From positions 13,404,464-13,468,463 of the forward strand of contig NC_043011.1 of NCBI RefSeq assembly GCF_006345805.1: a DNA stretch of 64,000 nucleotides. Reading direction: 5' to 3'. This DNA comes from Octopus sinensis (Eukaryota). Shown here piece by piece: positions 23,470-64,000 of the stretch. The notes below the pieces were generated by a model, which ran no database searches, was not told the origin of the DNA, and worked only from the letters and a program-made list of their open reading frames with translations. Every line of letters begins with the position of its first letter. The first letter of the stretch is position 1. A program made the translations under genes and the position numbers.

Positions 23470-23614
23470 CCTGGTTCTGGTACTCAGACAAATGTTGGTC
23501 TTTCACAACAACTTCAGGCAGCTTGTGCCAGATCACAACTGGAACACATGGTTGCTTTGGATATTGATTCTGAGCCTTGTCATGTGCGTATGAGTGGAAT
23601 TGTCTGTACTATAG
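23470..23614 (+). CDS. Pyk: Pyruvate kinase gene 1, exon A (first recognisable coding exon, 145 bp)
   Basis: tttttcAG acceptor, GTatgt donor; encodes [10 protein letters not shown]...[10 protein letters not shown], the PK N-terminal 'IxCTIGP' motif; phase 1 end joins exon B. Confidence 0.95.
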
Positions 23615-29567: not shown

Positions 29568-29659
29568 GCCCAGCTTGCAAAGATGTTGATTCTCTAAAGA
29601 AGATGATGATTGAAGGAATGGATGTTGCCAGACTTAATTTTTCTCATGGATCATATGAA
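29568..29659 (+). CDS. Pyk: PK gene 1, exon B (92 bp)
   Basis: tttcAG / GTaaat; encodes (G)PACKDVDSLKKMMIEGMDVARLNFSHGSYE with the PK motif RLNFSHG. Confidence 0.97.
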
Positions 29660-30132: not shown

Positions 30133-30252
30133 TACCATGGTGAAACTATTAAGAATGTGAGAGAAGCTACCCAGAAGTTTGATAAACCGAAGATAATTGC
30201 TGTTGCACTGGATACAAAAGGACCCGAGATAAGAACAGGCCTTCTCAAGGGT
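30133..30252 (+). CDS. Pyk: PK gene 1, exon C (120 bp)
   Basis: tttcAG / GTaagt; YHGETIKNVRE...ALDTKGPEIRTGLLKG with the PK motif DTKGPEIR. Confidence 0.97.
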
Positions 30253-32609: not shown

Positions 32610-32796
32610 GGTCCCTCAGCTGAAGTGTCTTTGAAAACGGGAGCAAAAATAAAGATTACAACAAATGAGAGTGCTATGGAGGCTTGTGATGAAAATACTT
32701 TGTATGTTGATTACAAAAACATTACCAAAGTCATGAAAGTAGGATCTCGAATGTACATTGATGATGGCTTAATTTCTGTTATTGTTAAAAACATGG
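32610..32796 (+). CDS. Pyk: PK gene 1, exon D (187 bp, B domain)
   Basis: ttttcAG / GTaata; GPSAEVSLKTG...YVDYKNITK...YIDDGLISVIVKNM. Confidence 0.96.
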
Positions 32797-33504
32797 GTAA
32801 TATTTTTATTTGATTTTTATATTCTATCATATTTAGAAATCCAAGAATCTGTAGTACTCTTAAAAACAAAACGTTATTTTGATGTTTCTTATATAAGTGC
32901 CATAAAACTTGAAAGATTTATTTGTCAGTGCTTCTAATCTTCATAAACACATTGGATTGATTTGTGTTAGAATATATTGATCAAAAATAAAGCTGTGATA
33001 GAGAAAAGAGACGAATGATATATAATGGGAAATGGTTGTGGAAGAGTTTGGTTAATTGAAGGTGAAATAAATTAGCATTTATCAGCATTGAAAGAAAATG
33101 GCTTTTTTTTATATCTAAAGTGAGAAGAATAGAAAGATGGAAATACTATGAGTGTAATTATAAAAAAAAGAATGCAAAACATTAATAAAAAACAAATGTT
33201 TTTAACATCAGCATATAAATATTGATGGGTAATTATTCTCGTAGAATACTTTGAAGTATTTTATTTTCATAAGTTTCTCTGAAGTTCACTGGTTTAAGAT
33301 CAATGAACCTTTAACTTGATTTTGGTTCCTTTGTTCTGGTCCACTGGAGGATTTTATATTTACCAGGGTCTCACTATGCTATTGACCATTAACTGCTTTT
33401 ACAGCTGGTTATTCCTTATCAGTTCAAAATAGGAACAGCACTTATTTCCAGCTTGATAACATTAAACAAAGTATATTTTTTTTTAATTTGCATTTGTTTT
33501 TCCT

Positions 33505-34347
33505 CAGTCAGGCAACTGCAAAAGAAGTATTTAGTTAAGAACAAACTGTTGTACTTGGCATTTGTTGATCTAGAGAAAACCTTTGACAGGGTACCCCACT
33601 CTGTGATATAGTGGTCCTTGAGAAAGCTAGGGATAGATGAATGGCTTGTGAAAGCTCTATAGTACAGGAATGCTGGTAGTAAGTTAAGAGTTGGCCATGG
33701 GTACACTAAGGAATTTAATGTACAGGTCAGTGTTCACCAAGGGTCAGTTCTCAGCCCCCTCCTATTCATCTTCCTCTAGGCCATAACAGAGGAATTTAAG
33801 ATTGGAAGCCCATGGCAACGCCTATATTGCTGATCTTGCCCTTGTAGCTGAATTTGTAACAGAATTAGAAAAGAAATTCCAGATGTGGAAACAGAACTTG
33901 CAATCTAAGCATCTTAGTAAACTTAGCAAAAAATAAGGTCCTAGTGAGCAAAAATCAGAGAGGACCTTTCACCCATCAGGTAAATGGCCTGGCTTGGTAT
34001 ATAGGAAGGGTGTACGCAGAAATTCCTTTTGGTATACCCAGTGCAAGCCGTGGACACGCAAAAGGTGCAGTGGAATAGTTGGAAGATTAACGGAGAAAGT
34101 GTTCATACTTGGAAGACGTATGGGAGACATAAAGACCACAGATACACGGGAAACTGATATCCTTAAATATCCCGGTGACTTTCTGGAAGTTTTAGATAAT
34201 TTTTGCTACCCAGGTAACCTAGCAGTGGAGGAGGTTGTACAGAAAATGTAATTGATAGAATAAAAATAGGATGAAAAAAGTTCAGAGAGCTTTTACCAAA
34301 AGTCTTCCTCTCCAAGTGAAGGGAAGGGAAGGTTGTATGATGCATGT
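33505..34347 (+). mobile_element. RTE-like LINE reverse transcriptase fragment
   Basis: LYLAFVDLEKTFDRVP...VHQGSVLSPLLF RT motifs with stops and frameshifts. Confidence 0.85.
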
Positions 34348-34382: not shown

Positions 34383-34525
34383 GTTCTGACTATATGGATT
34401 GTGAAATTGAAAATGGTGGTGACCTTGGTAGTAAGAAAGGCTGCAATTTACCTGGAGTTCCTGTTGATTTGCCTGCTGTATCAGAAAAAGATAAACAAGA
34501 TTTGCTATTCGGTGTAGAACAAGAC
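34383..34525 (+). CDS. Pyk: PK gene 1, exon E (143 bp)
   Basis: ttgtAG / GTatgt; [47 protein letters not shown]. Confidence 0.96.
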
Positions 34526-34633: not shown

Positions 34634-34761
34634 GTTGATATGGTGTTTGCTTCTTTTATAAGAAGTGCTGATGGTGTTCGAGAAATCAGAAAAATTCTTG
34701 GAGAGAAAGGAAAAGACATTAAAATTTTTGTGAAAATTGAAAACCACCAAGGCGTGAAAAA
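34634..34761 (+). CDS. Pyk: PK gene 1, exon F (128 bp)
   Basis: atttAG / GTaatt; [10 protein letters not shown]...[14 protein letters not shown], containing the catalytic K and E of the PK active-site signature (KIEN). Confidence 0.96.
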
Positions 34762-34840: not shown

Positions 34841-34991
34841 CTTTGATGAAATTTTGAAGGAAACTGATGGGGTCATGGTTGCGCGTGGTGATTTGGGTAT
34901 TGAGATTCCTCCTGAAAAAGTGTTTTTAGCCCAGAAGATGATGATAGCTAAATGCAACAAAGCTGGTAAACCTGTTATTTGTGCCACTCAG
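34841..34991 (+). CDS. Pyk: PK gene 1, exon G (151 bp)
   Basis: tttcAG / GTatgt; [27 protein letters not shown]...KPVICATQ. Confidence 0.98.
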
Positions 34992-36196: not shown

Positions 36197-36349
36197 ATGT
36201 TGGAAAGTATGGTGAAGAAACCACGTCCAACTCGAGCTGAAGCTGGTGATGTTGCAAATGCTGTTCTGGATGGTGCAGACTGTGTTATGTTGTCAGGAGA
36301 AACTGCCAAAGGCTCCTATCCTTTGGATGCTGTTCGTATGATGGCTAAA
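36197..36349 (+). CDS. Pyk: PK gene 1, exon H (153 bp)
   Basis: tatcAG / GTaggt; [15 protein letters not shown]...[15 protein letters not shown]...MMAK. Confidence 0.98.
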
Positions 36350-38376: not shown

Positions 38377-38543
38377 ATTGCTCGTGAAGCTGAATCTGCT
38401 GTGTTTCATAGTCAACTGTTTGAAGAACTCAGACGTCAGACACCAACTCCAACAGATGCTACCCACACCGTTGCAATTGCAGCTGTTGAAGCTTCATTCA
38501 AGTGTCATGCTGCTGCTATCATTGTTATTACAACAACTGGAAG
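38377..38543 (+). CDS. Pyk: PK gene 1, exon I (167 bp; equivalent of vertebrate PKM exon 9/10)
   Basis: tttttcaaAG / GTcagt; [11 protein letters not shown]...[11 protein letters not shown]. Confidence 0.95.
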
Positions 38544-38689
38544 GTCAGTAATATCAAAAAGTTTTGTAGCTTTGAATGATGAATGAAAATATATTGGCTC
38601 TCTCTCTTTCTCTCTCCCCACTCCACCTTCGGCGTAGGTTACACATTAGTGACTTCAAACTACAGGCACAAAGGATTCTAAGAAGCAAG

Positions 38690-40520
38690 CCAATTTGGAA
38701 AAGGATTATCCGGAAGCTTCAGTCTCTTTTGAAGAGACATCCTAACTGAAGCATTTAATGAGGAGGAGGAGGAGTTACTGATTTGTAACATCGAGGATAA
38801 CTGGATGTTCCTACAAGACAACTTACTGAAAGCCACAGACCAAGTTTGTGGTTAGCCCCAACCAAACCTAGGGTGACGTGGTGATGGAACTGTGGTTGAC
38901 AGGAACATTAAAGCAAAGAAACATGCTTGGAAGGACTGTTAGTGTGGCAGTAGCAAGAAGGCAGCTAGAAGGGAATCTAGAAAGGGTGGTGAGCTGGCAG
39001 AATCGTTAGCACGCTGTGCGAAATGATTAGCAGTATTTCGTCTGCTGCTACGTTCTGGATTCAAATTCCACCAAGGTCGATTTTGCCTTCCATCCTTTTG
39101 GGATCGATTAAATAATTACCAGTTACGCACTGGGGCGATATGATCGACTTAATCCCTTTCTCTATCCTTGTTTGTCCCCTCTGTTTAGCCCCTTGTGGGC
39201 AATAAAGAAATAAGGGAATCTAGGAGGCAGGTATACTTAGCTAGGGGTGAAGCAGAAAGGAAGAAGTTTGCCATGTTCTGTGGAGTGAGGACCAGCAATT
39301 TCAAGTGTTTTGGTTTGCAAGATAGTGTGCCAGGGAAACTTGTGATGTTGGAGAGAAGTATTTGCATGGATGATGATTCATTTGCAGTTAGTAGAACTTC
39401 CAAGCCTCTTTCTTTGCAGAGTCACTATGAAAGGCTGCTAAATGTGGTGAACTCATGGGAGAAGGAGAATCTGAATAGAAGTAGCATGGTAGATAAGGCC
39501 ATGAAGGATATGAAGACCAGGAAAGCTCCCAGTCCATCAGGCAGTGTGGGTTATGGTCTAGTCACCCATATAGTTAATTGAGTTGTACACGAGGGAATCA
39601 TCCCAATGACTGTAGCAGCACCATAGTTGATTGGTACAAAGGTAAAGGTGACACTTTAGACAGACATAAATACAGAGGATCAGGTGATGAAAGTGATTGA
39701 GAGGGTCATAGCCCAACTAACTTGGAAAAGGTGCAATAAACACTATAAACATACAGAAGATTGATTCTATCAAATGCCAGAAGCGACACCTAGAAGTAGT
39801 TGAAAGCTTCTGTTGTCTAGGTGACCAAGTCTGCTGTGGAGGTAGATGCGCCAAGAATGTAGCTGCTAGAATAAGAATAGGCTGGGCAAAGTTCAGAGAG
39901 CTTCTACCTTTGTTGGTAGCAAAGGACCTCTTCCTCAGAATGAAAGGCAGATTGTATGATGTTTGAGTGAGAACAGCCATGTTATATGGCAGTGAAAGTG
40001 GAGCCGTGACTGCAGAGACATGTGAAGGCTTGAAAGAACCGAAGTTAGCATGCTTCGCTGGATGTGCAACGTCAGTGTGCATGTACGAGAGAGAAAAATT
40101 GGGCATAAGAGACAGCTGTGCTGGTATGGTCAAGTACAGTTGTGTAAAGATGTGCCAATCTCTATGGAGGAAACTTGTGATAGAGGTAGACCCAGGAAGA
40201 CGTAGGATAAGGTGGTGAAGCATGATCTTTGAATGTTGGGCCTTATGCAGGTGATGATAAATGGAGAACTTTGATGTGTTGTGCTTAAGACATGTCAAGC
40301 CATGTGAAATCAGTCACGGCCAATGCCGGTGTAATGCAACAGGCACCTGTACTGGTGGCACATAAGGGCACCTGTGCCAGTGGCACGTATGAAGCACCCA
40401 TTAAACTCTGTGTTCGGAAGGGCATCCAGCTGTAGAAGCGGGTACAGCTCTCTGGTTTACCAGTTCCAGTTAAACCATCTAACCCATGCCAACATGGAAA
40501 GCAGATGCTAACTGATAATG
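38690..40520 (+). mobile_element. Decayed RTE-like LINE running into its 3' UTR, interrupted by a SINE
   Basis: RTAMLYGSE motif, ORF2 end (CCCAGGAAGAC...), continuous into family C sequence and GAT tail; shares sequence with 33505-34347. Confidence 0.75.
38985..39214 (+). mobile_element. SINE family A inserted into the RTE fragment
   Basis: Matches 55277-55510. Confidence 0.82.
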
Positions 40521-41632: not shown

Positions 41633-42013
41633 TACTCTTTTACTTGTTTCAGTCATTTGACTGCGGCCATGCTGGAGCACCGCCTTTAGTCGAGCAAATC
41701 GACCCAAGGACTTATTCTTTGTAAGCCCAGTACTTATTCTATCGGTCTCTTTTGCCGAACCGCTAAGTGACGGGGACGTAAACACACCAGCATCTGTTGT
41801 CAAGCAATGCTAGGGGAACAAACACGGACACACAAACATATACGCACACGCACAGGCTTCTTTCAGTTTCCGTCTACCAAATCCACTCACAAGGCATTGG
41901 TCAGCCCGGGACTATAGCAGAAGACACTTGCCCAAGATGCCACGCAGTGGGACTGAACCCGGAACCATGTGGTTGGTAAGCAAGCTACTTACCACACAGC
42001 CACTCCTACGCCT
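41633..42013 (-). mobile_element. SINE family B
   Basis: Near-identical to the other family B copies. Confidence 0.88.
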
Positions 42014-42111: not shown

Positions 42112-42230
42112 GTCAGCTCATCTTATTTCTGCCTATCGTCCACGTTGTCCAATCCTGGCTGTTACTAGAACTGCACAGGTTGCTCGCCAGGCTCACATGT
42201 ATAGAGGGATTATTCCAATTTATTATGAAG
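42112..42230 (+). CDS. Pyk: PK gene 1, exon J (119 bp)
   Basis: tttttAG / GTaagt; [19 protein letters not shown]...[15 protein letters not shown]; ends in phase 1. Confidence 0.96.
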
Positions 42231-43952: not shown

Positions 43953-44161
43953 AGAAAAGAGACAGTCAATGGACTGAGGATGTTGATAAACGCATTCAGA
44001 GAGCTCTGGAAGCTGGGCATGACCATGGGTTTATCTTCAAGGGAGTTCCTCTAGTGATTGTGACTGGTTGGAAATCTGGTTCAGGCTTCACTAACACGCT
44101 GAGACTTATCAATGCACCCGGCAGAGATGAAATGACTCCTATTATGGCCAGTCACTTTTGA
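43953..44161 (+). CDS. Pyk: PK gene 1, proximal terminal exon K (209 bp incl. TGA)
   Basis: ctacacAG acceptor, phase 1; (E)KRDSQWTEDVDKRI...VIVTGWKSGSGFTNTLRLINAPGRDEMTPIMASHF*; exons A-K sum to 1614 nt = 538 codons with no internal stop. Confidence 0.95.
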
Positions 44162-45133
44162 ACGATGTGATTTTGATGATGCTGGGTTGCCAGTTCTTTA
44201 GAGACTTACTCTAAACTCCTGTTTCAATTTAGTGACCTTTTTTTCTTATATAGAATAACAGATGTCTACCCTGTCTTAAATAGGGACTTACTTTGTAGTA
44301 AATACAATCATGTACTTATCCTTTCCATGAAAAGTGTGACTATAAAATTAAGTGATTTTAGTAATACCTTTTGACTACTTCTGCAGCAACATCTAAAATA
44401 TTAAGTATAATAATACTTGGAGCTTTCGTTTCTCAATTTTTCATTTCTTTCTATGCTAATCCCGATGGTGATTTCATTGTTTTTACTTTCAAGATGAAGG
44501 TTTACATAAATTTCTGTACAAGAAACTTTCATTGCTAAGAATTTTTGAAAAGAAATAATCATGTCTAATAGAAAAAAATAACGATCTGAAGCAAAATAAC
44601 ACAGTTGTTAACATGAATAACTTGTTCTAATATAACATTAGTTCAACTTCCAAAATTATTTTGTATTTAAAGCTGTTTAAAGACTCAAAATCTACAATGT
44701 GTTATACTCCTGCAAGTATTTCATTTGTTTGATTCATTTGTTTTTTGTTTTTTTTTTTTTTTCAACTGGGACCAGAATTTATAAAATTTCAAAATGCAGT
44801 TTTGAAATTTTGAGCTACATGGTTCCTTTGTAATTTTGTAAACTAAAAAATATTTCATATTTTAGTTGATACTCATTGAATACGACAAATATAACCCAAT
44901 ATATTTGGCAAATCTAATGTAAAATATCTTAGTTATAGAATTTATTGTAGTACGTTTCCTGAATATGAAGTATAAGTTGAGCTAATTATTTCATATATTT
45001 AAAACTCATGAATAGATTTTTCTTTCAAAAGTCTTGTAGGAATACTTTCTATTTGTTTTAGTTTTTAATTTTGATGTTTTAGGACATTTTTTCTTTGTTT
45101 TATGAAATCTTCATTTTTGAGATACAATATTTC

Positions 45134-45186
45134 AATAAATTGTAGATTTGTTTGTGTCTAAAATGGTTTGTTAAATTGTTAATAAA
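45134..45186 (+). terminator. Candidate poly(A) signals for the exon-K isoform
   Basis: AATAAA at 45134-45139 and 45181-45186, about 1 kb after the stop; hexamers are common in AT-rich DNA. Confidence 0.35.
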
Positions 45187-45845
45187 TGTGTGCAAATACT
45201 TTTTTAGTCGTCCTTGTCATTTATCCCTTATTTATTTTGTTTTTTTTTTTCTCTTTGAAACTGACAATTTTAATCCCATTTTAAAATCTACCTCCTTCTG
45301 CTTGGAAGTGCTTTTGGCTAACATTTAACTTTGGTTAACTAATTGGTTACTGGTCTTTTTCCTGCAATGTCTACCCAGAAAGCTTTAATTTTCTGCTGTC
45401 TCTAACATTCCTTTTCCCAACCTATTCTTCATCTATTTAGGTCAGTAAAAGAGAAATTAAATTTTAACAATTTGAAATGTTTCTTTAATTTTTGTAAATA
45501 TAGTGGACTGGAAAAATGCATCAACAAATGGTTGCAAGCATAACTGAGATTAAATTCTCTTCACAACAATATGGTAACGGGTTTGATCCCACTTTGCTGC
45601 ACCATGGGCAAGTGTCTGAGGGAAATTTCTGGAGAAAAAAACTATGCAGATGCCTGTTATGTGTATATTTTTTATTTGTCTTTTGGAAATTCTTTGATGT
45701 TTTACTTTGTAAGGGGAGGTAAGTTTCTTAGTGGGAATGGATGGTGGCGCTATTAGGACCTCAATTATTTGTTACATAAAATGAATGCTAAACTTAGAAT
45801 TAAGCTTGATATAAATTGTCTGTTGGTGTTTCCTCAACATAGTTA

Positions 45846-45846
<1 letters not shown>

Positions 45847-45912
<66 letters not shown>
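45847..45912. repeat. (TA)n microsatellite
   Basis: Pure TA run; others near 40526-40561, 46883-46920 and 52340-52390. Confidence 0.95.
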
Positions 45913-45918
<6 letters not shown>

Positions 45919-46880
45919 TGTGTGGATAATACATTTGAAATTCATTAACAAATGTTACTTATGATGTACATTGTACAAAAGCTGAGATTTATAGAATTAA
46001 TTAAAAAACAAATTAATTGAAATATATACACAAGTATTTGTATTTCAAAATTCACTAATACACCTATGACATTCTTATTTATTGACTTTCAATGAGTAAG
46101 AAAGTAGTGTGGGATTATTAAATCTTATGACAATTTGAAGCTTCAGGTGTGAAATTCTGGCTTTTTATGTTAGTAAATGGAGTTCTTTTAAAAAAGGAAT
46201 TCGAGAACGGTAAATTATTTCATGTTTACCTGTTGGTTAATATAATTCTCTACTTTATATTTCTTGAAGACGAGGAAATATTCTTTCTTTATTGCTTTTG
46301 AAACTAAAAATTAACATTCTCAAATTAAAATTGTTGCTTGAATCTAATACTTTATATGCACTTTCTGACAAGTTGTGGTGCACCTGAGCACTGTATACAA
46401 TAATTTCATTATTAATATTAATATATTTTTAAAATTTCTAATGTATGCAATTTCTGGTGCTCCACGTGTATGGCTACCATTATTAGTGTTGTATTCCATG
46501 AGAAAAACCGGTTTAAGTAATGAAAACAATGCAGCAGGTTCTGCTTGTTGCCTCATCTTTTTGATTCCATTATACTTCATAAGACCAGATATCTTTTGCT
46601 GTTCTGGGTTTTGGATCTATACCTAACCTATTGTAAGGATCTCTTGGTAAGTCATTTCACTCATTCATCATTGTTTTACATTTGTCTATCATTTTTACTT
46701 TCATGGTGATCCTTCTTTGATAGTAGTACACATGGACACAGTGGCAAAATGTTTCTTAAATTGTTTTTTTTTAATGGCATTGGTCTTTCAAGATGTATTA
46801 TTTATAGGTTATTTTTTAAAAATATATGCATATCTGATGTTTTAGGTATATTTAATAAACATTAATTTTTAATTATCTTC

Positions 46881-46911
<31 letters not shown>

Positions 46912-49749
46912 ATATATATATGATGTATTGTTGGTTACCAACGTCGCTTCACTGGCACCTGTGCCGGTGGGCACGTGTAAAAAGATTCAAGCAAGGTCAT
47001 TGCCAGTGCAGGCGGCTCGTAAAAATCACCCACTACACTCTCGGAGTGGTTGGCATTAGGAAGGGCATCCAGCTGTAGAAACTCTGCCAGATCAAGACTG
47101 GAGCCTGGTGCAGCCATCTGGTTGCCAGCCCTCAGTCAAAACCGTCCAACCCATGCTAGCATGGAAAGCAGACGTTAAACGATGATGATGATGTTATTGA
47201 AAATGTCTCTAACTGAGCTTTTGCTGTTGCTTGTAGACTCTTGTTGGAGCTAGGCACTTTCTTAAAGTATGAGTGAACTAATATTTCATCTTGTAACATA
47301 CACAATATTGTTTTAAAGAACTTTAACTATACAAGTACCATTTTAGTATATTCAATTAGGTACTTTCTATGATAATAAACTAGGCTGAATTCATTGAAAA
47401 GGTGTTTGGAACATGTTAAGTGAGGATCTAGAATAAGGTAATCCACACAGGTGTGTATATAAATACACATGTGCAGGTGTGTGTGTACATATATAGTAGT
47501 AATAATAATAATTGTTGATGTTAAATAAGCAGAAAAGTAAGTTAATGTAAAATTGGGAAATGGCATTTTCAGAATTGTTCAAGCTATAACACTGAAAACA
47601 CGGTGACTTTGATAGAAAATAGTTTCATTAGTGGTGGTTTGTTCTTTGCCTCTTCATTTGAGAACTGAAAGGGCTTTACATTTTAATGAAAGTGGTGTGA
47701 AGTAGAAAGGCTGGACAAGTTATTGAGAATGTTTGTTTTTAAAATTACATGTATTTTATTTATATATTTTTAAAGTAGTAAATAAGTGATGATGCTAATA
47801 CTTTTTAGGGTGAATTTAATTGTAGTCTTTGCTTACCTCCATTCTGTATGTAGTTAATAAACTTTTGTTTTTGTTTGATACAGACACAATATTACAAAAA
47901 TTCGAAAACTGAGCCTTTCAAAAGAATTTAGCTTTGGTGGTTATTGTACCAAAAACTCTTCTGAAGTTATTTTTATTTACTCTTCTTCAAAGTGCAGTTG
48001 AATAGCAATTTTAACTTTTCTCCTTATTAGGTACATATATGAAGAACAAATGAAATAGTTAAGAATAATATTTGTAGTCAGACTAACCTATTACTTTTGT
48101 TTCATAATCAAGATATGTGAATTTCAAAGGAAAAGTTCACCTAGTACAATACTAAGTGGCTGTCTCTATAGAACCATACTCCTTGGTAGCTTTTTTTTTC
48201 CTGTTAACACTTGGTTCAGTCTCTAGTAAAAGCTCAGAATTTATTCTTTCAAGGGCATTTACTAATTGGATTTTGCATAAACAGTTGGTTGTCATCCAAT
48301 CAGTAGACTTATTGAAGTGTTGCATTATTTTCTTATGAGAAAACTGGTTTACTTGGATCTTTTCTATTTTTTTCTAGTCTTGTTCTTGTTGGTTTTTATA
48401 TTTATCTTTCAGTGGTTTTTGGAGAACTACTTCAGGTAGTTTACTTCTGCATATAATTCACTTAAGATTTGTGTGTGTGTGTGTATGTATACATGTATAT
48501 ATTATATGCAAGCATATTTATGAGTAAGCAGCTTTCTACTTGGCACGAATGAAACTAAAAGTGGTTCTAAGAAGAAAAAATAAAATTATGAACAGAAATT
48601 CCAAAGGGTGTAGTAGAGAAATAGATTGATATGCATATAATTTGGTATGGACTTTTTACAGGAAGAATCCCTTTTTATAAAGATCTAATTTGTCTAAGAC
48701 TGATGTATCGTTAGGTTGTTATTCTCCTGTTCCTCTTATGTCACTATTTTGCTGCTTGAGCTGACATGTGTATTATGTTACCATGTAAAATTTTTTATGT
48801 AGTACTTTCCACCTTTTTAATGTTTTAATTTATTTTGTCAATATACTTCAACAAATGATTAACCTTGATATATTTAAATATAAGTTATATCAAATTAGAG
48901 AAGAAAAAAAAATGACTTTATTTTGTTCCTTGATGATTTTGAAGACCTTATGTTACCTTCTACAAAGACAGCTTCTTTACAGTATTGGACAGGGTTACTG
49001 CCATTGACTATAAAATTGACCACTTATATACTGTCTTAAGATTAATGATTGTTAATCAAAATTTTAAGATAGGAAAATGAATTCTTCTAATACATATGAA
49101 ATGACATTTAATTCCTGAAAAGTATAATCTTAATTTTCATGCTTAGATGGTTTTAAGTTAACATTTGTACTCTCAATGACAGACTAAAAAAAATTGTTAT
49201 AAGGTGAAAATCATTGGACAAAGCAATCTTCTGTAATCAATAAGTGTTGCTGTTAGTTTTTTGTTTTATTTGAGCAAAGAAAAGCATTAACATGTACTGT
49301 ATAGAATATGGTCTATCTCAATCAGTCTTACTGCTCTGATATGTAAAATTTATTAAGTTGTTACATGCCTTTTTTTTTTTTCTTATAAAACTTGACTACA
49401 GCAATTTTTAATTTTTAATTTGGTGCCTTATAAAGCAATGTCTTTTAATCACTGATTGTAGTTATGTTAAGCTCAATAAATTTGTTTATAGACTTCTGTA
49501 GCAAAATCGTATTTACATTAGGTAAAAAAAAAAAAAAAAAATGGAAAATCATATCAAAAGATTTTAGTTTTTATTCAACATTTAGTAAACAAATTTTGTG
49601 TTAAAAAAAAATTACTAAAGTAGAATCTATTTATATGGATTCTGAAGAATTTGTGAAATGACATTGTGACAGAATTAAAATGAATTAAGAATGTATTTCC
49701 AAAGATCTAATTATTTTTAAAATTAAAAATTTGATTTTTATTATTGTAG

Positions 49750-49985
49750 AGGCTGCTGCAGATGATCCTATGGTGGATTTGGATAGGAGGATTTATCGTG
49801 GAATAGGAATTGGCTTACAATTAAAGACAATAAAGAAAGGCGATCATTTGGTGATCATGAGTGGTGTTCGTCATAACAATGAATGTAATGACACTGTAAG
49901 GGTTCTAGCATGTCCAGCTATTTCTGGAGAGATGCCTCCTATTGCTGGTTTTAAGCCCCTACCAAAAAATACACTTGGATTTTAA
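49750..49985 (+). CDS. Pyk: Probable alternative terminal exon K2 of PK gene 1 (236 bp incl. TAA)
   Basis: tttgatttttattattgtAG acceptor, phase 1 like exon K; open to TAA; (E)AAADDPMVDLDRRI...KKGDHLVIMSGVRHNNECNDTVRVLACP... aligns gap-free with exon K over 56 aa (17 identities); AATAAA at 50051 and 50104. Confidence 0.78.
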
Positions 49986-50050: not shown

Positions 50051-50109
50051 AATAAACAATATTTATATATCAGGTTGTATTTTTCTGCCAAAGTATGTTT
50101 AGAAATAAA
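50051..50109 (+). terminator. Candidate poly(A) signals for the exon-K2 isoform
   Basis: AATAAA at 50051-50056 and 50104-50109, 65-125 nt after the TAA. Confidence 0.4.
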
Positions 50110-50359
50110 GTATCTTAAATAAAATTATTGGATTTTTTTTTTCTTCCATTTTTGAAAAATCCACCTACTAAAAACTACATGATTCTTGGATAGTTTTAAA
50201 AAAAATTTATAAATTACATTGTCTATAGAAACTAAAAGAATATAAAATTGTACATAACATGTTTATTTGATTTTTAGTTTTCTCAAAGCAAATATTTATT
50301 TCTGACAAATAGCTAGCTATATATATATATATATATATACATACATACATACATACATA

Positions 50360-50637
50360 CGAGGTCTGATCAATAAATATCCAAACTGTTGCCATAGTAA
50401 CAAAGTTAAAGCAAGCAAAGTGAAGCACAGATTGACCTTGAAATCTGCTGTGCTTGCATATTAAGTTTTAACATTCGAGCTCACTTCTGCTGTAAACAGC
50501 AGAAGTGAGCAAGAATGTTAAAACTTAGTGCACACGCACAGCAGGGTTCAAGGTCAATCTGTACCAAGCAGCCTCACTCTGCATGCTTTAGCTTCATTAC
50601 TATGGCAACAGTCCGGATACTTATTGATCAGACCATG
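50360..50637. mobile_element. Fully palindromic mariner-type MITE
   Basis: TIR CGAGGTCTGATCAATAAATATCC...GTTGCCATAGTAA mirrored at the right end; symmetry continues to the centre ...GCTCACTTCTGCTG-TAAA-CAGCAGAAGTGAGC... Confidence 0.8.
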
Positions 50638-51217
50638 TGTGTGTATGTGTAATATGATTGAAGGAAATGGAAGATGCATTTGGCACCTTTATTCAGTATG
50701 ACAATCGTTCCGACTCCTCCTGCAACTGTCTGTTATGGGTAGGATTTTGTGCATCTAATAGTGTAGCATCTGCCTATGCAGTTTGTCATATCAGGTACAT
50801 AAAGAAGGGGATGTCATGCTAGACATACTGAGATGTCCTAGGCATGTTGTTCAAGCCTGCTTTATCTTGGTTTTATATATATATATATATATATATATCA
50901 GGAGCGTGCACTCTCAAGTATGCGTTGCATGCCGTGTGATTTTTTTTTATCCATATGATCGGAAAATTAGATAAAATAGTTACTTTGTTTCAAAGAAAAT
51001 CCGTCCAATTGTTTTCGAAATATTTTGTCTCCCCTTCTCATCTCTCAGTAACTCGTACTTCTGCTTTGAGAAGTCATGCTTTGAGAAGACCCACATGACA
51101 GACACTCCCTCTCTGTCTCAGTTTGTCCTTCCTTCCTTCCTCTCTCTCTCTCTCTTAGTGACTTGTTTAAAAAACATGCTAAGAGGTTAGGGCATTTGAA
51201 ATTATATATATATAATA

Positions 51218-51870
51218 AGGTATCAAAAAGTTCCGAGACTAGTTCTGTAGCATCCCAACAGATGGCAGCCTATGATTGTGTGTCTAGTGAGAAATTGTAA
51301 AAAATTTTTGTCATGGACAGGAAGTTGGAACAAGGAGCTAATGTGAAATTTTGCATTAAATTTGGAGAGTCTGCTACATTGAGCATGCTTTGGCAAGCTT
51401 ACAGCAATGAGGCAATGAGTCATACACAATGTTTCAAGTGGCACAGGCTCTTCAGAAGCAGAACATCTCTGGAAGACAATTAATGATCTGGAAGGCCTGT
51501 CATGAAGGTCACCTAGGAATGTGGAGAAAATTCATCAGCTTTTGTATGAGGGTTGTTGGAAGACGATCAACATTTAGAAGTGTCTGAGGAAGGACATTTG
51601 GCAAAAACAACTGGATCTGTGGAGTGTGAAGAATTGGATTCTTCACAACAACAATGCATCCTGTTACCAAGCTCTCCTCACTTGAGTTTCTCACCAAAAA
51701 CATGGTATTGCTTCCACACCTGCAGACTTCCATCTCTTTCCCCAAGATGAAAATGCAGCTCAAAGGTTGCATTTTTAACACCTTTGTCGAATTCTAGGCT
51801 GGATTCAAAAAGTGGCAAGAAATGCTGGGTCCAGTATATTGCAGCACAAGGTGACTATTTTGAAGGTTAT
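51218..51870 (+). mobile_element. Decayed, internally deleted mariner transposon
   Basis: Reads MDRKLEQGANVKFCIKFGESA...CFKWHRLFRS...SGRP (mariner HTH region) and a decayed C-terminus (FKKWQE...; plus frame). Confidence 0.75.
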
Positions 51871-51880
51871 TAAACATAAG

Positions 51881-52337
51881 TACTCTCTTTTACTTGTTTC
51901 AGTCATTTGACTGCGGCCATGCTGGAGCACTGCCTTTAATTGAGCAACTCGACCCCAGGACTTATACTTTGTAAGCCCAGTACTTATTCTATCGGTCTCT
52001 TTTGCCGAACAGTTAAGCGACGGGGACATAAACACACCAGCATCGGTTGTCAAGCAATGCTAGGGAGACAAACACACACACACATACATACATCATCATC
52101 GTTTAACGTCCGTTTTCCGCGCTAGCACGGGTTGGACGGTTCGACCGGGGTCTGGGGAGCCAGGGGCTGCTCCAGGCTGATCTGGCAGTGTTTCTACAGC
52201 TGGATTCCCTTCCTAACGCCAACCACTCTGCGAGTGTAGTGGGTGCTTTTTACGTGCCACCTGCACAGGTGCCAGAGGGATCTGGTATCGGTCACGATCG
52301 GTTGGTGCTTTTTATGTGCCACCGGCACAGAAGCCAG

Positions 52338-53526: not shown

Positions 53527-53910
53527 TACTCTTTTACTTGTTTCAGTCATTTGACTGCGGCCATGCTGGAGCACCGCCTTTAGTCGAGCAAATCGACCCC
53601 GGGACTTATTCTTTGCAAGCCCAGTACTTATTCTATCGGTTTCTTTTGCTGAACCGCTAAGTGATGGGGACGTAAACATACCAGCATCGGTTGTCAAGCA
53701 ATGCTAGGGGGACAAACACAGACACACAAACACACACACATATATATATATACATATATACGACAGGCTTCTTTCAGTTTCCGTCTACCAAATCCACTCA
53801 CAAGGCATTGGTCGGCCTGGGGCTATAGCAGAAGACACTAGCCCAAGATGCCACACAATGGGACTGTGGTTGGTAAGCAAGCTACTTACCACACAGCCAC
53901 TCCTGCGCCT
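53527..53910 (-). mobile_element. SINE family B
   Basis: Near-identical to the other copies. Confidence 0.88.
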
Positions 53911-56545: not shown

Positions 56546-56745
56546 CTAATATGTCATCGGAAGCGGATCATTTTCACCGGGCACTGTAGCCACACACATC
56601 GTATCAGTGGAACCACTGCCTTCAGTCCAACCACGCACCAGCATAACTCGGTCTTTGACTTTCAAGAATCCTCTTTCCACTGCATTCTCAAAGGCTTTCT
56701 TGATTCCTAAGTTGTAATCTTTTTCCCAAAAACCAGTAACTGGGC
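56546..56745 (-). CDS. PK paralog, terminal exon K' (200 bp incl. TAG)
   Basis: ttttacctgcAG acceptor, phase 1; (S)PVTGFWEKDYNLGI...VRGWTEGSGSTDTMCVATVPGENDPLPMTY*; gap-free with exon K over 56 aa (16 identities). Confidence 0.92.
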
Positions 56746-57499
56746 CTGCAGGTAAAATGTTAAAAACGACTATTAGCGTGTCGGTTAATGAGGGGAAATG
56801 GTTTAATATTTAAGTTAATGGCGATATGAACAACCATGGAATTATGACCACAAACTGCAGAATGTGGACTAATGAAGTTTACTTTGCAACAACGGTTTGT
56901 AATCAGACTCACTATGCTACACTGAGAGTAAGTTTATTTTACCATAACTCCAAAATGGACGTTTTGGTAGATAGAAATGGAAAGAAGCCCATTGTGTGTG
57001 TGTATTTAAAGGTATGTGTATATGTATATTGGCTAATGGGATAATGTCCAGTGTAAATGTATAGGGTAATGGAATTATGGCCAATACTGTGACCTATATA
57101 CAGTGCTGGCCATAATTCAAGATGGCTTCTAATTTTTAGCCATCTTAAATTTGTCTTATATTCTATTACTCTCTCTCTCTCTCTCTAGATTCCTGATGAG
57201 TTGTTTGATCTACAAGCCTATGAAATATCAGTTTCCATGGAGCTGAGTTAGACTGTCATTAAATAATATATGTAACTCCTGCCAAATGTACTGAGTATCA
57301 CTTACTTTCATTTGTCAACTGTCATATATAAACGACAGGCTTCTTTCCAGTTTCTACCTAACAAATATATTCATAAAGGTTTGGTCTGCCTAGGGTTATA
57401 GTAAAAGGTACATGCCCAAAGTGGTGGTGCAGAGAGGAACTGAACCCAAAGCCAGATAGTTGTGGAGCAGAATTGTTAGCAACACACCTATGGCTGCAG

Positions 57500-57745
57500 T
57501 ATCTGTGCTAAAGGAATTATGACTAGTGTTTCAGTATGAGATTCTGCCCAACAATTCAACTTGTGGGTTAATAGAACTATGGCTAACATTCCAGAAACCG
57601 GGCTAATGGAACTATGGATAACATGACATTATGTAGGCTAACACTGCAGTATGATAGGCTAAAGGAACTATGGCCAACGTTGCAGTATGTGAGATAATGA
57701 AATAATGGTTGGTAGATCAGTATTTAGGTTAATGGAATTGTGGCT
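57500..57745. repeat. Degenerate tandem repeat, unit about 30-40 bp (GGCTAATGGAACTATGGCCAACATTGCAGTAT-like)
   Basis: Several diverged units; related units at about 57030-57090. Confidence 0.55.
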
Positions 57746-58098
57746 TGCACTTTTGTATCACCAAAGTCTGGGTGCTTGGATTTGTTTTATATCATTCATA
57801 GCAATAACATTTTATTTCCTTTCCAAATTCTCTTTGAATTTTCTTTAAATTTCCAATGTAAAAATATTTTTTTATACCAGATTGAGAAGTATAAACTGTT
57901 TACTGATCAATGTTATAAGAATTTTTGCATATGAAAAACATAGGACATTAAAAGATTAATCTCTGGGAAGCAGAATTGTTTACATTGATTTATAAAGTAA
58001 TTTAAAAAAGGATCGTTCAGAGGGACTATTTTCATAGAAGAAATACTCAATGACTGTAATATGATTTTAAGTTTCAAAATAAAATATAGATATCTTAC

Positions 58099-58217
58099 TT
58101 TGGTCAATGACTGGAAGAACTCCACGATAGAGATGGAGCTGCCTTGCTGTGATTGGTGACCTTGTGACTGCAATCACTATGCAACGTGGTCGATAACGAG
58201 AGATGAGAGCAGCAGAT
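58099..58217 (-). CDS. PK paralog, exon J' (119 bp)
   Basis: ttacAG / GTaaga; [39 protein letters not shown]; same size and phases as exon J. Confidence 0.94.
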
Positions 58218-58937
58218 CTGTAAATTGATATGTAAAATGTCCATGTAACATTACACTTAAATATTATCAATTGCTCAATTTAGTCATGTCAAAGATTATA
58301 ATCCACGAAATGAATTTTGTAATACATAGTTATATAATTTTTGTTGTAATTTAGTATAAAGAACTCTGTTTTCAATGCTATGTACAACAATGGAGCAATT
58401 AAGGTACTGAACTCATTGTTAATAATTAAAAAGTTTGGCAGAATAGTTAGTACACTGGGCTAAATGCTTAGTGGCATTTTGTCAGTCTTTAGGTCCCGTG
58501 TTCAAATTCTGCCAAGGTTGACTTTGCCTTTCATCCTTTCGGGGTTGATAGAACATGCACTGGGATTGATATAATTAATTTAATCTCTTCCCCGAAATTA
58601 CTGGCCTTGTGCCAAAATCTGAAACTTGCCACTAGGACTTCATTATTTGCTACTGTATCTTCATATGTTTTGTTTCAAATGCAAATGTTAAAAACTTATA
58701 ACATTTGTGTTGACTAATTTAATAAATTTTTTTTTGTAATTTTGTTTTAAATTTCTGCAAAAAATGGTGAAAAAAGTGTCAGTTTCTTCGGTTTTCCCTT
58801 AAAATGCAATTGTAAGCATACTCACATTTCACTACTTCATCAAATTTGTATGAACTTAAGACTGCTGATATCTGGTTGATGCAAATCATACATTCCTAAG
58901 TCCATTAAATCATTGCTAAATACAATATACATACATA

Positions 58938-59140
58938 TACTCTTTTACTTGTTTCAGTCATTTGACTGCGACCATGCTGGAGCACCGCCTTTAGTTGAAC
59001 AAATCGACCCCAGGACTTATTCTTTGTAAGCCCAGTACTTATTCTATCGGTCTCTTTTGCTGAACCGCTAAGTGACGGTGATGTAAACACACCAGCATCG
59101 GATGTCAAGCAATGCTAGGGGGACAAACACAGACACACAA

Positions 59141-59175
<35 letters not shown>

Positions 59176-59347
59176 CATATATACGACAGGCTTCTTTTAG
59201 TTTCCGTCTACCAAATCCACTCACAAGGCATTGGTCGGCCCGGGGCTATGGCAGAAGACACTTGCCCAAGATGCCATGCAGTGGGACTGAACCTGGAACC
59301 ATGTGGTTGGTAAGCAAGCTACTTACCACACAGCCACTCCTGCGCCT
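58938..59347 (-). mobile_element. SINE family B
   Basis: Near-identical to the other copies. Confidence 0.88.
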
Positions 59348-59562
59348 ATCAAGCCCAACACATATTCATTATATCAAACATTTATGCCAGTAAAGATATT
59401 GTTAAACAATTAAGTTTTCCTTGCAATCATTAGGTCACAGACTCAATGTTGCTGTGACACTCTGGGTAAGTTCTCTTCTGCCATAACCTTGGGCCTGGGG
59501 TGATGGACTGAACTTCTAACACAAAATGCAAGCTGTGTGATGCTGATTCTGTCTGGGGATTA

Positions 59563-59777
59563 TACTCTCTTTACTCTCTTTTACTTGTTTCAGTCCTTTG
59601 ACTGCGGCCATGCTGGAGCACCGCCTTTAATCGAGCAACTCGACCCCAGCACTTATTCTTTGTAAACCCAGTGCTTATTATATTGGTCTCTTTTGCTGAA
59701 CTGCTAAGTGACGGGGACATAAACACACCAGCATTGGTTGTCAAGCAATGCTAGGGAGACAAACACAGACACACAAA

Positions 59778-59815
<38 letters not shown>

Positions 59816-59981
59816 TTCGATGGGCTTCTTTCAGTTTCTGTCTACCAAATCCACTCTCAAGGGTTTGGTCGGCCCGAGGATATAGTAGAAGACACTTGCC
59901 CAAGATGTCACGCAGTGGGACTGAACCCGGAACCATGTGGTTGGTAAGCAAGCTACTTACCACACAGCCACTCCTGTGCCT
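59563..59981 (-). mobile_element. SINE family B
   Basis: Near-identical to the other copies. Confidence 0.88.
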
Positions 59982-60720
59982 ATTATATTGCAATTAAAGT
60001 GAGTACGGACTTGTAGGTGCATTACCACCCTTGACAGCGGGTAAACAAGCTGGCTATACAGAGAGAGGGCACTACACAACATTGAGGTTCAGCACGTGAC
60101 CTCATCTCTTCTTTTCTGCATGGACACGCAAGCTATGAGGACGCAACTTGACTGGCTCTATCTTAGGCTTCAGGCCAGCTAGCGGATAGGAACACAGTAC
60201 AGAAGACCATAGCCCTTACATGCCAACCATTCTGTTTGTCGTTCCATTATGTATGTATGAGGCTCAATAACGACCACCACCATCTAAAGACTGATCACCC
60301 ATTTACACGAGGTTGGAACATTTATTATGAACTTTTTTGATTTGCAATCCTTGTAATTGCAGGCCTCATTATGTAAAAGTGCAGAGTAAGTTTGTGGGGT
60401 TTGAAAGAATCACTTGCTTCATATGCTACAAACACTGAAACACTTAATAAAAAATACATAACTCATCTCAACTTCATTTGATTAGAAGACAAATTATTAA
60501 TTCCATTTCATATTAGAATGATAGAAGATATCTTCAAAGACTTTTATAGATCTTACTTTTGTAACCCATCCAACTTATTTGTGAATGGTGGAATGGTTAG
60601 TGTTGAATAAATTACTACTCTTTACATTCTGAGTTCAAATCTTGTGAAAATCAAATTTGCTTTTATTAACCCTTCCAGGGTTAATAAAATAAAGTACCAG
60701 AGTTGATTTAATCAACTACA

Positions 60721-60766
60721 CTATACCCTTTCCTACTATACCCTTTCCTACTATACCCTTCCTTTG
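60721..60766. repeat. 15-bp tandem repeat x3
   Basis: CTATACCCTTTCCTA repeated three times. Confidence 0.85.
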
Positions 60767-61089
60767 TACTAATGTTGAACTCATTAAACAGAAATAGAAA
60801 AAGGAAAAAAAAACAGCTATGGGCTTGGGAACATGGGGTGAAAGTACACCTAAAGTTCCTGGTGGGTACAAAATCAAAATTTGCACCCCTACTTACTTTT
60901 CTCAGGTTTAGAAAACAGTGCACAAAAAGTAGCTTGAAATTAGTTTTCTTCTCCAAAAAAATTTTTTAAATCAAAGAATAAAAATAAGTAAAAAACAAAC
61001 AATAAGACCTTGCTTGTAAAAAATTTTGACCCTGGGTTTGCACCCACTAAGCAAATTTTGTTTCCAAGCCAGTAGAAACAGTTACTTAC

Positions 61090-61256
61090 TTTCCTGAAGA
61101 AGTTACTACTACAATAGCTTTTGCTTCACAGCTGATTGCTCCCTTCACGGCTGCAAGAGCTGTGGCCTCCTCTTTGCTCAAACGAAAATCACTGATTGTG
61201 CTCAAATCTTTCATAAATTGGTAAGCGAACATAGCCCCTTCAGCTTCACGACAGAT
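61090..61256 (-). CDS. PK paralog, exon I' (167 bp)
   Basis: ttgcAG / GTaagt; ICREAEGAMFAYQF...ATALAAVKGAISCEAKAIVVVTSSGK; same size and phases as exon I. Confidence 0.93.
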
Positions 61257-61386
61257 CTGCAAAGCAATTCACAAAAAGTTAAACTAGAAATAATTATTAA
61301 AGACATTTTTTTTATTTGTCCCACATCAGTTTGAAACTTGTTTGATGTCATGATGAAAGTCCAGTTTTCAGAGTTTTTCATTAGAG

Positions 61387-61605
61387 CAGCATTTCCCAAC
61401 TGGGGTTCCACAATACATTCCTAGGGGTTCCCCGAGAAAGTGTGAGATAAGCTAATGCTAATTTCATGATCGTAATATTACTATACATGCACAACATATT
61501 ATTGATTAATGTAATATTATAATATTAAATAAATATATATCATCATCATCGTTTAGCATCCGCTTTCCAAGGGTTACGCTAGGGTAAAAAGGTTGAGAAA
61601 CACTG
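61387..61605. mobile_element. hAT-type MITE in a paralog intron
   Basis: Termini CAGCATTTCCCAAC / GTTGAGAAACACTG; 8-bp flanks CATTAGAG / CATTAAAG. Confidence 0.75.
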
Positions 61606-63119
61606 CATTAAAGTAAGGTGGTATGAAACTTTCCAAGAATATTTAGGGTAGATTTCCTGATGTGTTGATTTCACTAGGATGAATGCTTTTGATTAGGAAA
61701 ATATAGACAAATAGAACAGACCAAATAACAGAGATGTGTGGGAAAAAATTAAAATAGCAATTGAAATGTTAAAACAACGTAGAGTATAGTATTTCAAGCA
61801 AAATAATATTTGTGGAGTGAGAAATATGATTTTCTTATTTTCCAGTTATTTTCCTGTTATTCTGGCATTTTTATTTACATCATCATATTCTCAGTAGTAA
61901 CTTTCACCATGTACATTTTTCAACAATACCACCAATTTGAAAAATCAAATATTCATGTATACAGACCAAAATGTAATTATCACAAAGTTTAGTAAAATAC
62001 CTGCTGTCATTATTGACTGTTTGGCTATTCAAATACTCAAACAAAAAACAAAAACCATCTTGATATGTGAAGGACACAGATTGTTAAAACAGATCAACAC
62101 AGTCCATCTTACCTATATGTTAAATGATCTATAAACACTATCTCTCACACTTAGTTCAAACACAACAGCACATATACACACATAAATAACTGTAGCATTA
62201 ATAACTTCTTTAGTCTGATACAATGCACCAGGGTGTGTACTACTAGGGTTAATTGTCATAATCATTTTAAGTCCACCTTCCATGCTGGTATGAAGGCTTG
62301 TCATGGTCTGAATCCTTTCTCATTTGTACTCAGGCATTCATGCACGATAATATTACACACCCACTGGAGCATGCTAACTTTATTTTTTGGCTCACCATTC
62401 ATTACCTATTTTTTTTTACACACTGTTAGAAGTGCTAAGTCAAAACACAATTCTTTGTGGTTAATCAACAGTAAAATATGGAATTTATTAAAACCATCAC
62501 TAACATCTACTTTTTAGTTTGACTTCAGACGTTTTAAAACACAGAATTTTTAGAAAAGATTTGGAATCAAGATCACCTTATAATTTTGTTTCATTTTGAC
62601 TAAACATAAAGACTCTACATTTTAATGCTTTTGTTATCATATTTCTATTAAAACACTCTTTGTTCAATTTATGTTGAAAATAATAAAGAATTTAGTAAAA
62701 TAAAATGTTATCATTAAGTTAGTGTTTGGAACATAAATAAACATTAAATTTTGATGGAAGGTTTTAAAGCAAAATGTTTGTGTTATAGAACTCAAGAGTG
62801 GTGGCCTTGGGCAGGTTGACATCAAAAGGGTTAAGAGAGAATTGATCAATGTGATGTTTTTACTTTTCTTAAGAGCAATAGTTGTATGGATAAAGTGAAG
62901 TGTGAAAAGTTTACCTCTTACTTTTTGCCATGTACATGTAATCGCTGCAGTATTAATAGCTGTAAGCTAATCAGACACACAGCAAAAGAAGGAAAGATAA
63001 AGTGACTGAATGGTTCTGTCAACAACACAACTGCACTACCAGAGTAGACAGTTAAAATTCTTGCAAAGATTTTGAGGATATTTGCAACTACTGTTTGATA
63101 TAAATCTCTTATTTCTTTA

Positions 63120-63343
63120 TTGTCCACAAGGGGCTAAACATAGAGGGAACAAACAAGGACAGACAAAGGGATTAAGTCGAATACATCGACCCCAGTGCAC
63201 AACTGGTACTTAATTTATTGACCCCGTAAGGATGAAAGGCAAAGTCGACCTCGGCGGAATTTGAACTCAGAACATAATGGCAGACGAAATACCGCTAAGC
63301 ATTTCGCCCGGCATGCTAACGTTTCTGCCAGCTCACCGCCTTG
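63120..63343 (-). mobile_element. SINE family A
   Basis: Reverse complement of 55277-55510. Confidence 0.85.
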
Positions 63344-63854
63344 ATATATATCTCTTAGTATAGCCAAGAAGAAAGAGAAATTTGCCAAGTAGATTGTTCC
63401 TCTGGTGCTTATATTAGAGAAGGAATTAATGGAATACATGAGAGTTTTAGGTTGAGGGTTTTCTTTACCAGTGCCGCCTTGACTGGCTTCCATGCCGGTG
63501 GCATGTAAAAAGCACCAACCGATCGTGGCCGTTGCCAGCCTCACCTGGCACCTGTGCCGGTGGCACGTAAAAAGCACCCACTACACTCATGGAGTGGTTG
63601 ACATTAGGAAGGGCATCCAGCTGTAGAAACACTGCCAGATCAGACTGGAGCCTGGTGCAGCCTCCTGGCTTCCCAGATCTCAGTCGAACCGTCCAACCCA
63701 TGCTAGCATGGAAAATGGACGTTAAACGATGATGATGATGATGATGACGATGATGTTAGCTGCATTTAGAGTTTTCAAAGGAGTAGATTAGTAGTACAAT
63801 AAATTACTATCTTTTAAGCTATAAAATTATTGCAGTATAACCTTGTAGCCTTAC

Positions 63855-64000
63855 CTGCACTAAAGTTTTGATGCTTTGTATTACATATTTTCCTTTAGCA
63901 GTTTCAGATGACAACATAACACAATCAATGCCATCTAAGACAGAATTAGCGACATCTCCTGCTTCAGCACGGGTAGGTCGAGGATGTATGGTCATACTCT
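63855..64000 (-). CDS. PK paralog (gene 2), exon H' (runs off the window edge)
   Basis: Reverse strand reads (E)[48 protein letters not shown] then a GTaagg donor; homologous to exon H. Confidence 0.93.

Follow-up and report, generated by a model that had tools for sequence, protein, structure and literature searches.

Can a pyruvate kinase (PK) gene exchange the effector half of its C-terminal domain by choosing between two last exons? In vertebrates, the M1 and M2 forms of PKM arise from mutually exclusive internal exons of 167 bp (exons 9 and 10), a classic example of how splicing controls metabolism, and to our knowledge PK isoform switching has so far been treated as a vertebrate invention built on that internal exon pair. 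The question is raised by a stretch of 64,000 nucleotides from Octopus sinensis (contig NC_043011.1, positions 13,404,464 to 13,468,463; the whole stretch is hereafter the window), in which a plus-strand PK gene, gene 1, ends in a canonical terminal exon, K, with a second candidate terminal exon, K2, farther downstream on that strand. The original prediction for this locus was that K and K2 are alternative last exons of one gene, and our analysis suggests that K2 is probably a functional last exon of this kind. The features on which the argument turns are these:

38377-38543, plus strand: exon I of PK gene 1, 167 nt, homologue of vertebrate PKM exons 9/10
42112-42230, plus strand: exon J of PK gene 1, 119 nt, the upstream exon common to K and K2, encoding (R) + 39 residues
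43953-44161, plus strand: exon K, canonical terminal exon of PK gene 1, entry phase 1, TGA stop at 44159-44161
45134 and 45181 (region 45134-45186), plus strand: first AATAAA hexamers after K, ~1 kb past the K stop, likely the proximal poly(A) region
49728-49749, plus strand: K2 acceptor region, T-rich tract aatttgatttttattattgtag, nearest upstream AG 45 nt away
49750-49985, plus strand: exon K2, candidate alternative terminal exon, 78 codons plus TAA at 49983-49985
50051, 50104 and 50118 (region 50051-50123), plus strand: three AATAAA hexamers after K2, 66-135 nt past the stop, candidate distal poly(A) signals

Homology of K2 to the pyruvate kinase C-terminal exon

Judged by its sequence, K2 is a real homologue of the PK C-terminal exon. 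BLASTP aligned K2 with K at 20 of 56 residues (36%) with one gap and E=1e-8 for the pair, and a global MAFFT alignment gave 21/68 (31%); the earlier count of 17/56 identical residues, about 30% and gapless, was approximately fair, if slightly low and short of one gap. K2 does stay open for 78 codons up to its TAA, and the EMxPI tail motif said to be common to both exons is present as DEMTPI in K and GEMPPI in K2. A hidden Markov model (HMM) of the PK C-domain, built locally without K2 and run against all 3502 six-frame fragments of the window, recovered the six real I, J and K exons of the two PK genes found there (gene 2, on the minus strand, is described below) and then K2 at E=7.6e-7, with the next fragment at E=0.66; a chance match was rejected on this E value. 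Joined to exon J, K2 can be aligned gaplessly with PKM chains in the PDB over residues 437-531, and J+K2 scores 67.2 bits against Pfam PK_C (PF02887; cut-off 28) over profile positions 28-113, a significant colinear match that places it in this family.

The aligned part of K2 in the local model begins at the first residue past the AG. This bears on whether K2 could be expressed as something other than a PK isoform, either in a separate transcript from the spacer between K and K2, carrying a 71-residue open reading frame (ORF) from an ATG at 49770, or as a non-coding 3' exon. That ATG is in frame, and an independent promoter would be compatible with our results, but residues upstream of the ATG still align to PK, the homology beginning at the AG; half of an alpha/beta domain would be unlikely to fold alone, and the pattern of constraint in K2 is that of the PK C-domain. 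We regard expression of this kind as highly improbable.

No PK exon relics were found by tblastn or by window-wide profile HMM, either between K and K2, where the original prediction had likewise seen no copies of upstream PK exons, or elsewhere in 44.2-56.5 kb. Hidden diverged copies of exons I or J upstream of K2 were rejected by the window-wide scan, assignment of K2 to the minus-strand gene as its last exon was rejected because K2 lies on the wrong strand, and K', the terminal exon of gene 2, was rejected as a parent of K2, the two sharing 15% of residues (10/66, MAFFT), or 22% over 36 tblastn-aligned residues. Because no other PK exon relics occur in 44.2-56.5 kb, only gene 1 is able to supply the rest of the domain, and because the only upstream PK exons on the plus strand belong to gene 1, an alternative last exon of gene 1 is the sole architecture that gives K2 a use.

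K2 could also have come from another PK copy, by recent partial duplication of the last exon of a diverged paralogue or by misplacement or collapse in the assembly, in which case its intact frame would reflect recency and not selection at this site. K2 is indeed not nearer to K (32 bits) than to several foreign tails (36-42 bits), and the search for further K2-like exons in this genome covered the window. It nevertheless lies directly downstream of K, on the same strand, in the same phase and at the same intron position, and has EMxPI in common with the gene-1-type K exons of relatives (P0153, P0161, P0162). No close parent was present among the best 150 of 361 matches in 1.84 billion representatives, the flanks of K2 occur only once in the window, are extremely AT-rich and show no trace of an intron or untranslated region duplicated together with it, and tandem terminal exons occur on a single contig in another animal (see below). 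An origin from another PK copy is as such very unlikely, and we return to K2 as a probable alternative last exon of gene 1.

Splice sites, phases and poly(A) signals

Exon J ends at 42230 in phase 1 (...TATTATGAAG/gtaagt, read as TAT GAA G/gtaagt), with the donor GTAAGT at 42231. K starts cacag/AGAAAAG at 43953 and K2 starts ttgtag/AGGCTGC at 49750, so that both exons open with AG after an acceptor AG in the phase matching exon J, as had been described, and the J-K and J-K2 junctions would each restore a GAG codon. With an acceptor position weight matrix trained on 14 acceptors of the two PK genes, the K2 acceptor scores 7.4 bits, which ranks it within the top 1.3% of AG sites in the window (7482 in all) and makes it the best within 450 nt on either side; real sites score 5.2 +/- 5.5 bits when left out one at a time, and K scores 2.8 bits. 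Competition between the two acceptors would be expected to go with a weaker proximal site, as is the case here (2.8 bits for K and 7.4 for K2) on a matrix drawn from only 14 sites.

AATAAA occurs on the plus strand once per 820 nt on average. The AATAAA reported close to K2 proved to be three hexamers, at 50051, 50104 and 50118, and the first after K lie in what is likely its proximal poly(A) region. The layout is that of an alternative last exon, with one donor and two phase-compatible terminal exons, each of which has an acceptor, a stop and a poly(A) signal.

Constraint on K2

The PK frame alone is open in K2, the other five frames carrying 4-7 stops each, and shuffling its bases keeps 77 codons open in 0.36% of trials (P=0.0036). 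The GC content of K2 is 40.3%, compared with 18.5% and 19.5% in the 200 nt on either side, and the transitions fall at the AG and the stop; a similar contrast is seen in confirmed exons of both PK genes. K and K2 are 44% identical in nucleotides and 35% at third positions, corresponding to a Jukes-Cantor distance of ~1.0 and a synonymous distance (dS) of ~1.9, which is saturated. At this distance the two exons are separated by only two gaps, both in frame, one of a single codon in the core and one of 8 codons in the tail, which is unreliably alignable.

As a neutral yardstick we used a contig from a related species (L001; Logan SRR11869391), aligned over J-K plus 1.6 kb beyond. It differs from the window by 363 mismatches and 101 indel events outside exons, compared with 13 mismatches and no indels inside exons. 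From this indel-to-mismatch ratio, a neutral copy at ~1 substitution per site would be expected to hold ~50 indels. The contrast between codon positions (49% identity at positions 1+2, 35% at position 3) was dropped as evidence of selection because a neutral K2 compared with a frozen K would yield similar values, a weakness not shared by the arguments from indels, stops and GC content.

With this yardstick it can be asked whether K2 is instead a non-functional relic that is no longer spliced, being either a duplicated terminal exon or the last exon left from a third PK gene that once lay between the two convergent genes and was lost. A neutral copy at this divergence should hold tens of indels, several stops and a GC content of 19%, none of which is seen: K2 has no stop or frameshift in 78 codons, and its GC content stands at 40% against 19%. 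Its acceptor coincides exactly with the homologous boundary and outscores that of K itself, its losses are limited to the effector site with the fold-defining residues kept, and a decayed gene would leave further exon relics, none of which is present. A relic would be consistent with the absence of transcript or orthologue evidence for K2 and with its position 4.5 kb past the likely poly(A) site of K. It would be consistent too with the standing of K2 as the most diverged PK tail in every comparison, with Trp482, Trp515, Gly518 and Gly520, nearly invariant elsewhere, all gone, and there is room for a very recent loss of K2 use. On balance we consider a relic unlikely. Maintenance of the K2 frame by selection, as opposed to decay, is well supported, and the original view of K2 as an old duplicate under selection draws its strength from the saturated synonymous sites, the intact frame, the GC island, the preserved acceptor at the phase-1 boundary and the retention of fold-defining residues.

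Tandem terminal exons in another animal

A 5.8-kb contig from another animal (L003; Logan SRR12548988) carries a gene-1-like PK whose exon J is 77% identical to that of the window and is followed by two terminal exons, Ka and Kb:

337-455 of L003: exon J, phase-1 end
1189-1412 of L003: Ka, tatatag/AA CCC ... TAA, AG acceptor, phase 1
2954-3165 of L003: Kb, ttttag/AT CCA ... TGA, AG acceptor, phase 1

Ka and Kb are both intact full homologues of the terminal exon, on the same strand, 1.5 kb apart and 54-58% identical. The nonsynonymous distance (dN) between them is 0.43 and dS is 1.83 (dN/dS ~0.24), and therefore both have been under purifying selection since their split. The arrangement is like that of K and K2: exon J ends in phase 1, and downstream of it on its own strand come two terminal exons that are homologous to each other, are entered in phase 1 and have separate stops. 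As such it makes the use of tandem terminal exons in such PK genes more probable a priori. Unlike K2, Ka and Kb both keep the canonical GWKxGSGxTNT loop, so that the swap in L003 would be the milder one. K2 and Kb have VD(L/V)DRRIY(R/K)GI in common. The end of Kb, ...ACAG/GTGAATGA, could double as a donor site.

Predicted effect of K2 on the enzyme

K2 encodes helix C-alpha-5, the last two strands of the domain, a replaced effector loop and a 23-residue tail ending in GF, which is longer than that of K. In human PKM2 numbering, Trp482 and Arg489 are both retained in exon K, as is the loop GWKSGSGFT. K2 has Pro at the position of Trp482, keeps Arg489 and carries the loop GVRHNNECN, with VRHNNECN in place of WKSGSGFT. 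When conservation was counted on an alignment of 12 C-domains, 12 tail columns were at least 90% conserved, and K2 keeps seven of these, comprising the three that are invariant in all 12 domains (Asp105, Gly134, Thr144) and four of the nine that are nearly invariant (Asp107, Arg109, Val132, Arg146). The five that it loses (Trp102, Trp135, Gly138, Gly140, Thr142), which by gapless alignment correspond to Trp482, Trp515, Gly518, Gly520 and Thr522 of human PKM2, are all in or next to the effector site.

It has been reported that Trp482 and Arg489 on helix C-alpha-5 of human M2PYK contact the C1 phosphate of fructose-1,6-bisphosphate (FBP), and that in a bacterial PYK a few residue changes in the effector loop re-target effector specificity (PMC10338316). 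Because both Trp482 and the effector loop are replaced, K2 probably alters allosteric control. The rest of the fold appears to be left in place. An AlphaFold model of I+J+K2 had a predicted local distance difference test score (pLDDT) of 78.5, compared with 82.7 for the I+J+K control, with a near-identical profile by block; in the K2 part, helix 102-119 and the next strand reached 88-93, the last strand ~78 and the loop ~66, and the tail was disordered. Foldseek matched the K2 model to PK C-domains with a query TM-score (TMq) of 0.71 over 150 columns. In these models K2 is compatible with the PK C-domain fold.

Searches for products and orthologues of K2

When J+K2 was run against 5.8 billion protein clusters in a word-indexed search, 5 matches resulted, all of them exon-J ORFs running into the intron, and a HMMER search of 1.84 billion representatives gave nothing K2-like among the best 150 of 361 matches, in a collection clustered at 50%, where isoforms could go unseen. 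When J+K was searched as a control, the matches were confined to genomic ORFs of exon K in relatives (P0153 at 97%, P0161 and P0162 at 77%), and a spliced product from this species was not among them, so that the absence of J+K2 from these protein collections carries no weight. Exact look-up of two possible K2 ORFs gave nothing, as did a scan of JGI metagenomes with back-translated K2, and a search for adjoining contigs of related species, made with the concatenated unique ORFs within 2 kb of K2, gave 6875 candidates, none of them significant.

Among relatives, L001 and a second contig (L002) are 78-81% identical to the window in aligned blocks with gaps counted, with ~13% mismatches at ungapped non-exonic positions, and the exon K protein is 97% identical to that of the orthologous exon in L001. 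L001 ends at window position 45797, five further contigs (L004-L008) also stop short of the K2 position, and four (L013-L016) are too short. Two others (L009, L010) carry intron-poor PK genes with a single K, and in the remaining two (L011, L012) there was no K within the fetched flank. One of these, a 4.7-Mb contig (L011; ENA ERZ25069865), has two exon-J-like segments, at 1093-1473 and 9971-10405, on the same strand and 9 kb apart. The interval lacks any exon-I-like segment, and the 10 kb that follow contain no K-like exon; the pair could reflect duplication of exon J or two PK genes whose introns are very long.

Several results count against K2 as a functional last exon. No protein spanning the predicted J-K2 junction was present in the set of 5.8 billion clusters or among the best 150 of 361 library matches. 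No K2 orthologue was found in relatives, the contigs of close relatives ending before the K2 position. K2 is approximately equidistant (27-32%) from K, Ka and Kb, which would be consistent with one old duplication and equally with two independent ones, and Kb is no more than a possible orthologue of K2. Scored alone against Pfam PK_C, K2 reaches only 15.5 bits (gathering score 28; E=0.019), at the expected positions 69-113. It is a long branch, with dN of 0.8-0.9 to everything, and the dN/dS of ~0.46 between K and K2 rests on saturated dS and would be compatible with a recent relaxation of constraint. AATAAA and T-rich acceptor-like sites are frequent in DNA of 19% GC. The alignment behind the AlphaFold model was shallow (12 rows) and made up mostly of canonical tails, which makes the model a compatibility check and not a proof.

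The second pyruvate kinase gene and repeats of the window

The window is AT-rich animal DNA (35% GC), dense in repeats resembling short interspersed nuclear elements (SINEs). All exon boundaries of gene 1 have AG/GT and consistent phases, and its remaining exons, upstream of exon I, are at approximately:

23470-23614, plus strand: exon of PK gene 1
29568-29659, plus strand: exon of PK gene 1
30133-30252, plus strand: exon of PK gene 1
32610-32796, plus strand: exon of PK gene 1
34383-34525, plus strand: exon of PK gene 1
34634-34761, plus strand: exon of PK gene 1
34841-34991, plus strand: exon of PK gene 1
36197-36349, plus strand: exon of PK gene 1

Gene 2 (56546-64000, minus strand), of which the original prediction made no mention, is much more diverged, lies tail to tail with gene 1 and continues past the end of the window. 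Its exons within the window are:

63998-63861, minus strand: exon H' of PK gene 2
61256-61090, minus strand: exon I' of PK gene 2
58217-58099, minus strand: exon J' of PK gene 2
56745-56546, minus strand: exon K', terminal exon of PK gene 2, intron position and phase same as K

Identity between the two genes is 65% in exon H, 36% in I, 61% in J and 31% in K, and the last intron of both is at an identical position and in phase 1. The tail of gene 2 keeps Trp482 and GWTEGSGST and has Gly at the Arg489 position.

Four ORFs (51313-51800, 5544-5970 on the minus strand, 33393-34248 and 38576-40215), two of which sit inside introns of gene 1, look by eye like remnants of transposase or reverse transcriptase; a Pfam search with four pieces of these ORFs gave no match. 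A SINE-like family of ~190 bp has at least seven copies at 79-89% identity, one of them within the spacer between K and K2, and a second repeat family was also noted:

47003-47193, 63551-63740, 3310-3500, 25478-25649, 6724-6900, 52086-52269 and 22024-22198: copies of the ~190-bp SINE-like family
51871-52000, 58926-59055, 41635-41750, 59572-59691, 53529-53644 and 2799-2913: copies of the second repeat family

An inverted repeat of 300 bp at 50347-50648, ~360 nt 3' of the K2 stop and with arms 79% identical, could be a foldback element. A tandem repeat at 12600-13350 has three open frames on the plus strand, with THSLAHSLARPL among the repeated translations, and provides the longest stop-free stretches among the six-frame fragments listed.

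A probable alternative last exon and pyruvate kinase isoforms

As a functional last exon of gene 1, K2 would derive from terminal exon K, duplicated in tandem long ago. Transcripts extending beyond the likely proximal poly(A) region, that of K (~45.15 kb), would be able to join the J donor (42230) to the K2 acceptor (49750) in place of that of K (43953), and the resulting J-K2 transcripts would be polyadenylated ~70-140 nt past the K2 stop. The product would be the same enzyme up to ...IYYE, catalytic core included, with its last 78 residues different. Helix C-alpha-5 and strands C-beta-4 and C-beta-5 would retain the C-domain fold, and the change of Trp482 to Pro and of the effector loop from WKSGSGFT to VRHNNECN would be expected to leave FBP activation lost or altered, and possibly also the contacts of the C-C interface and of the tetramer. 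We infer from these features that J is spliced to K2, that the choice between K and K2 is regulated and that it has a kinetic consequence.

Such a system would resemble PKM M1/M2 in that one gene carries a duplicated and diverged coding exon whose choice would change the response to FBP with the catalytic core untouched. The swapped region, helix C-alpha-5 with Trp482/Arg489 and loop 514-522, belongs to the FBP pocket to which the M2 exon contributes. In contrast to PKM, the duplicated unit here is the terminal exon and not the internal 167-nt pair, and as such the choice between K and K2 would be coupled to the choice of poly(A) site. K and K2 are also far more diverged (31-36% identity) than the PKM pair, and their alternative use is predicted from sequence. 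No second copy of exon I was found on the plus strand of the window by tblastn or HMM, the only other match being the minus-strand exon I' of gene 2; because exon I is single copy, there is no exon pair of the M1/M2 type. The locus is also reminiscent of PKLR L/R and of paralogue isozymes, in which one locus or a small family gives rise to differently regulated tissue isozymes, and the window does contain a second PK paralogue. Unlike PKLR L/R, where the difference is N-terminal and due to alternative promoters, the difference here would be C-terminal and due to an alternative 3' exon. In the literature we found no description of alternative C-terminal exons in invertebrate PK, and annotations based on RNA sequencing may already list such an isoform.

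A wider reading, which we put forward tentatively and hold with less confidence than the use of K2 itself, is that PK genes of the molluscan type contain an old and conserved tandem-last-exon system that swaps the effector half of the C-domain, a counterpart of M1/M2 coupled to 3'-end formation. In this animal the distal exon lacks all of the FBP-contacting loop residues, and its isoform might be unregulated by FBP or retuned to another ligand or partner through the loop and the 23-residue tail. If this is true, it would be a second, independent and invertebrate route to PK isoform switching, a convergent evolution of one regulatory idea. It would also tie PK allostery to the choice of poly(A) site, and may explain at the molecular level how tissue-specific PK isozymes arise in these animals.

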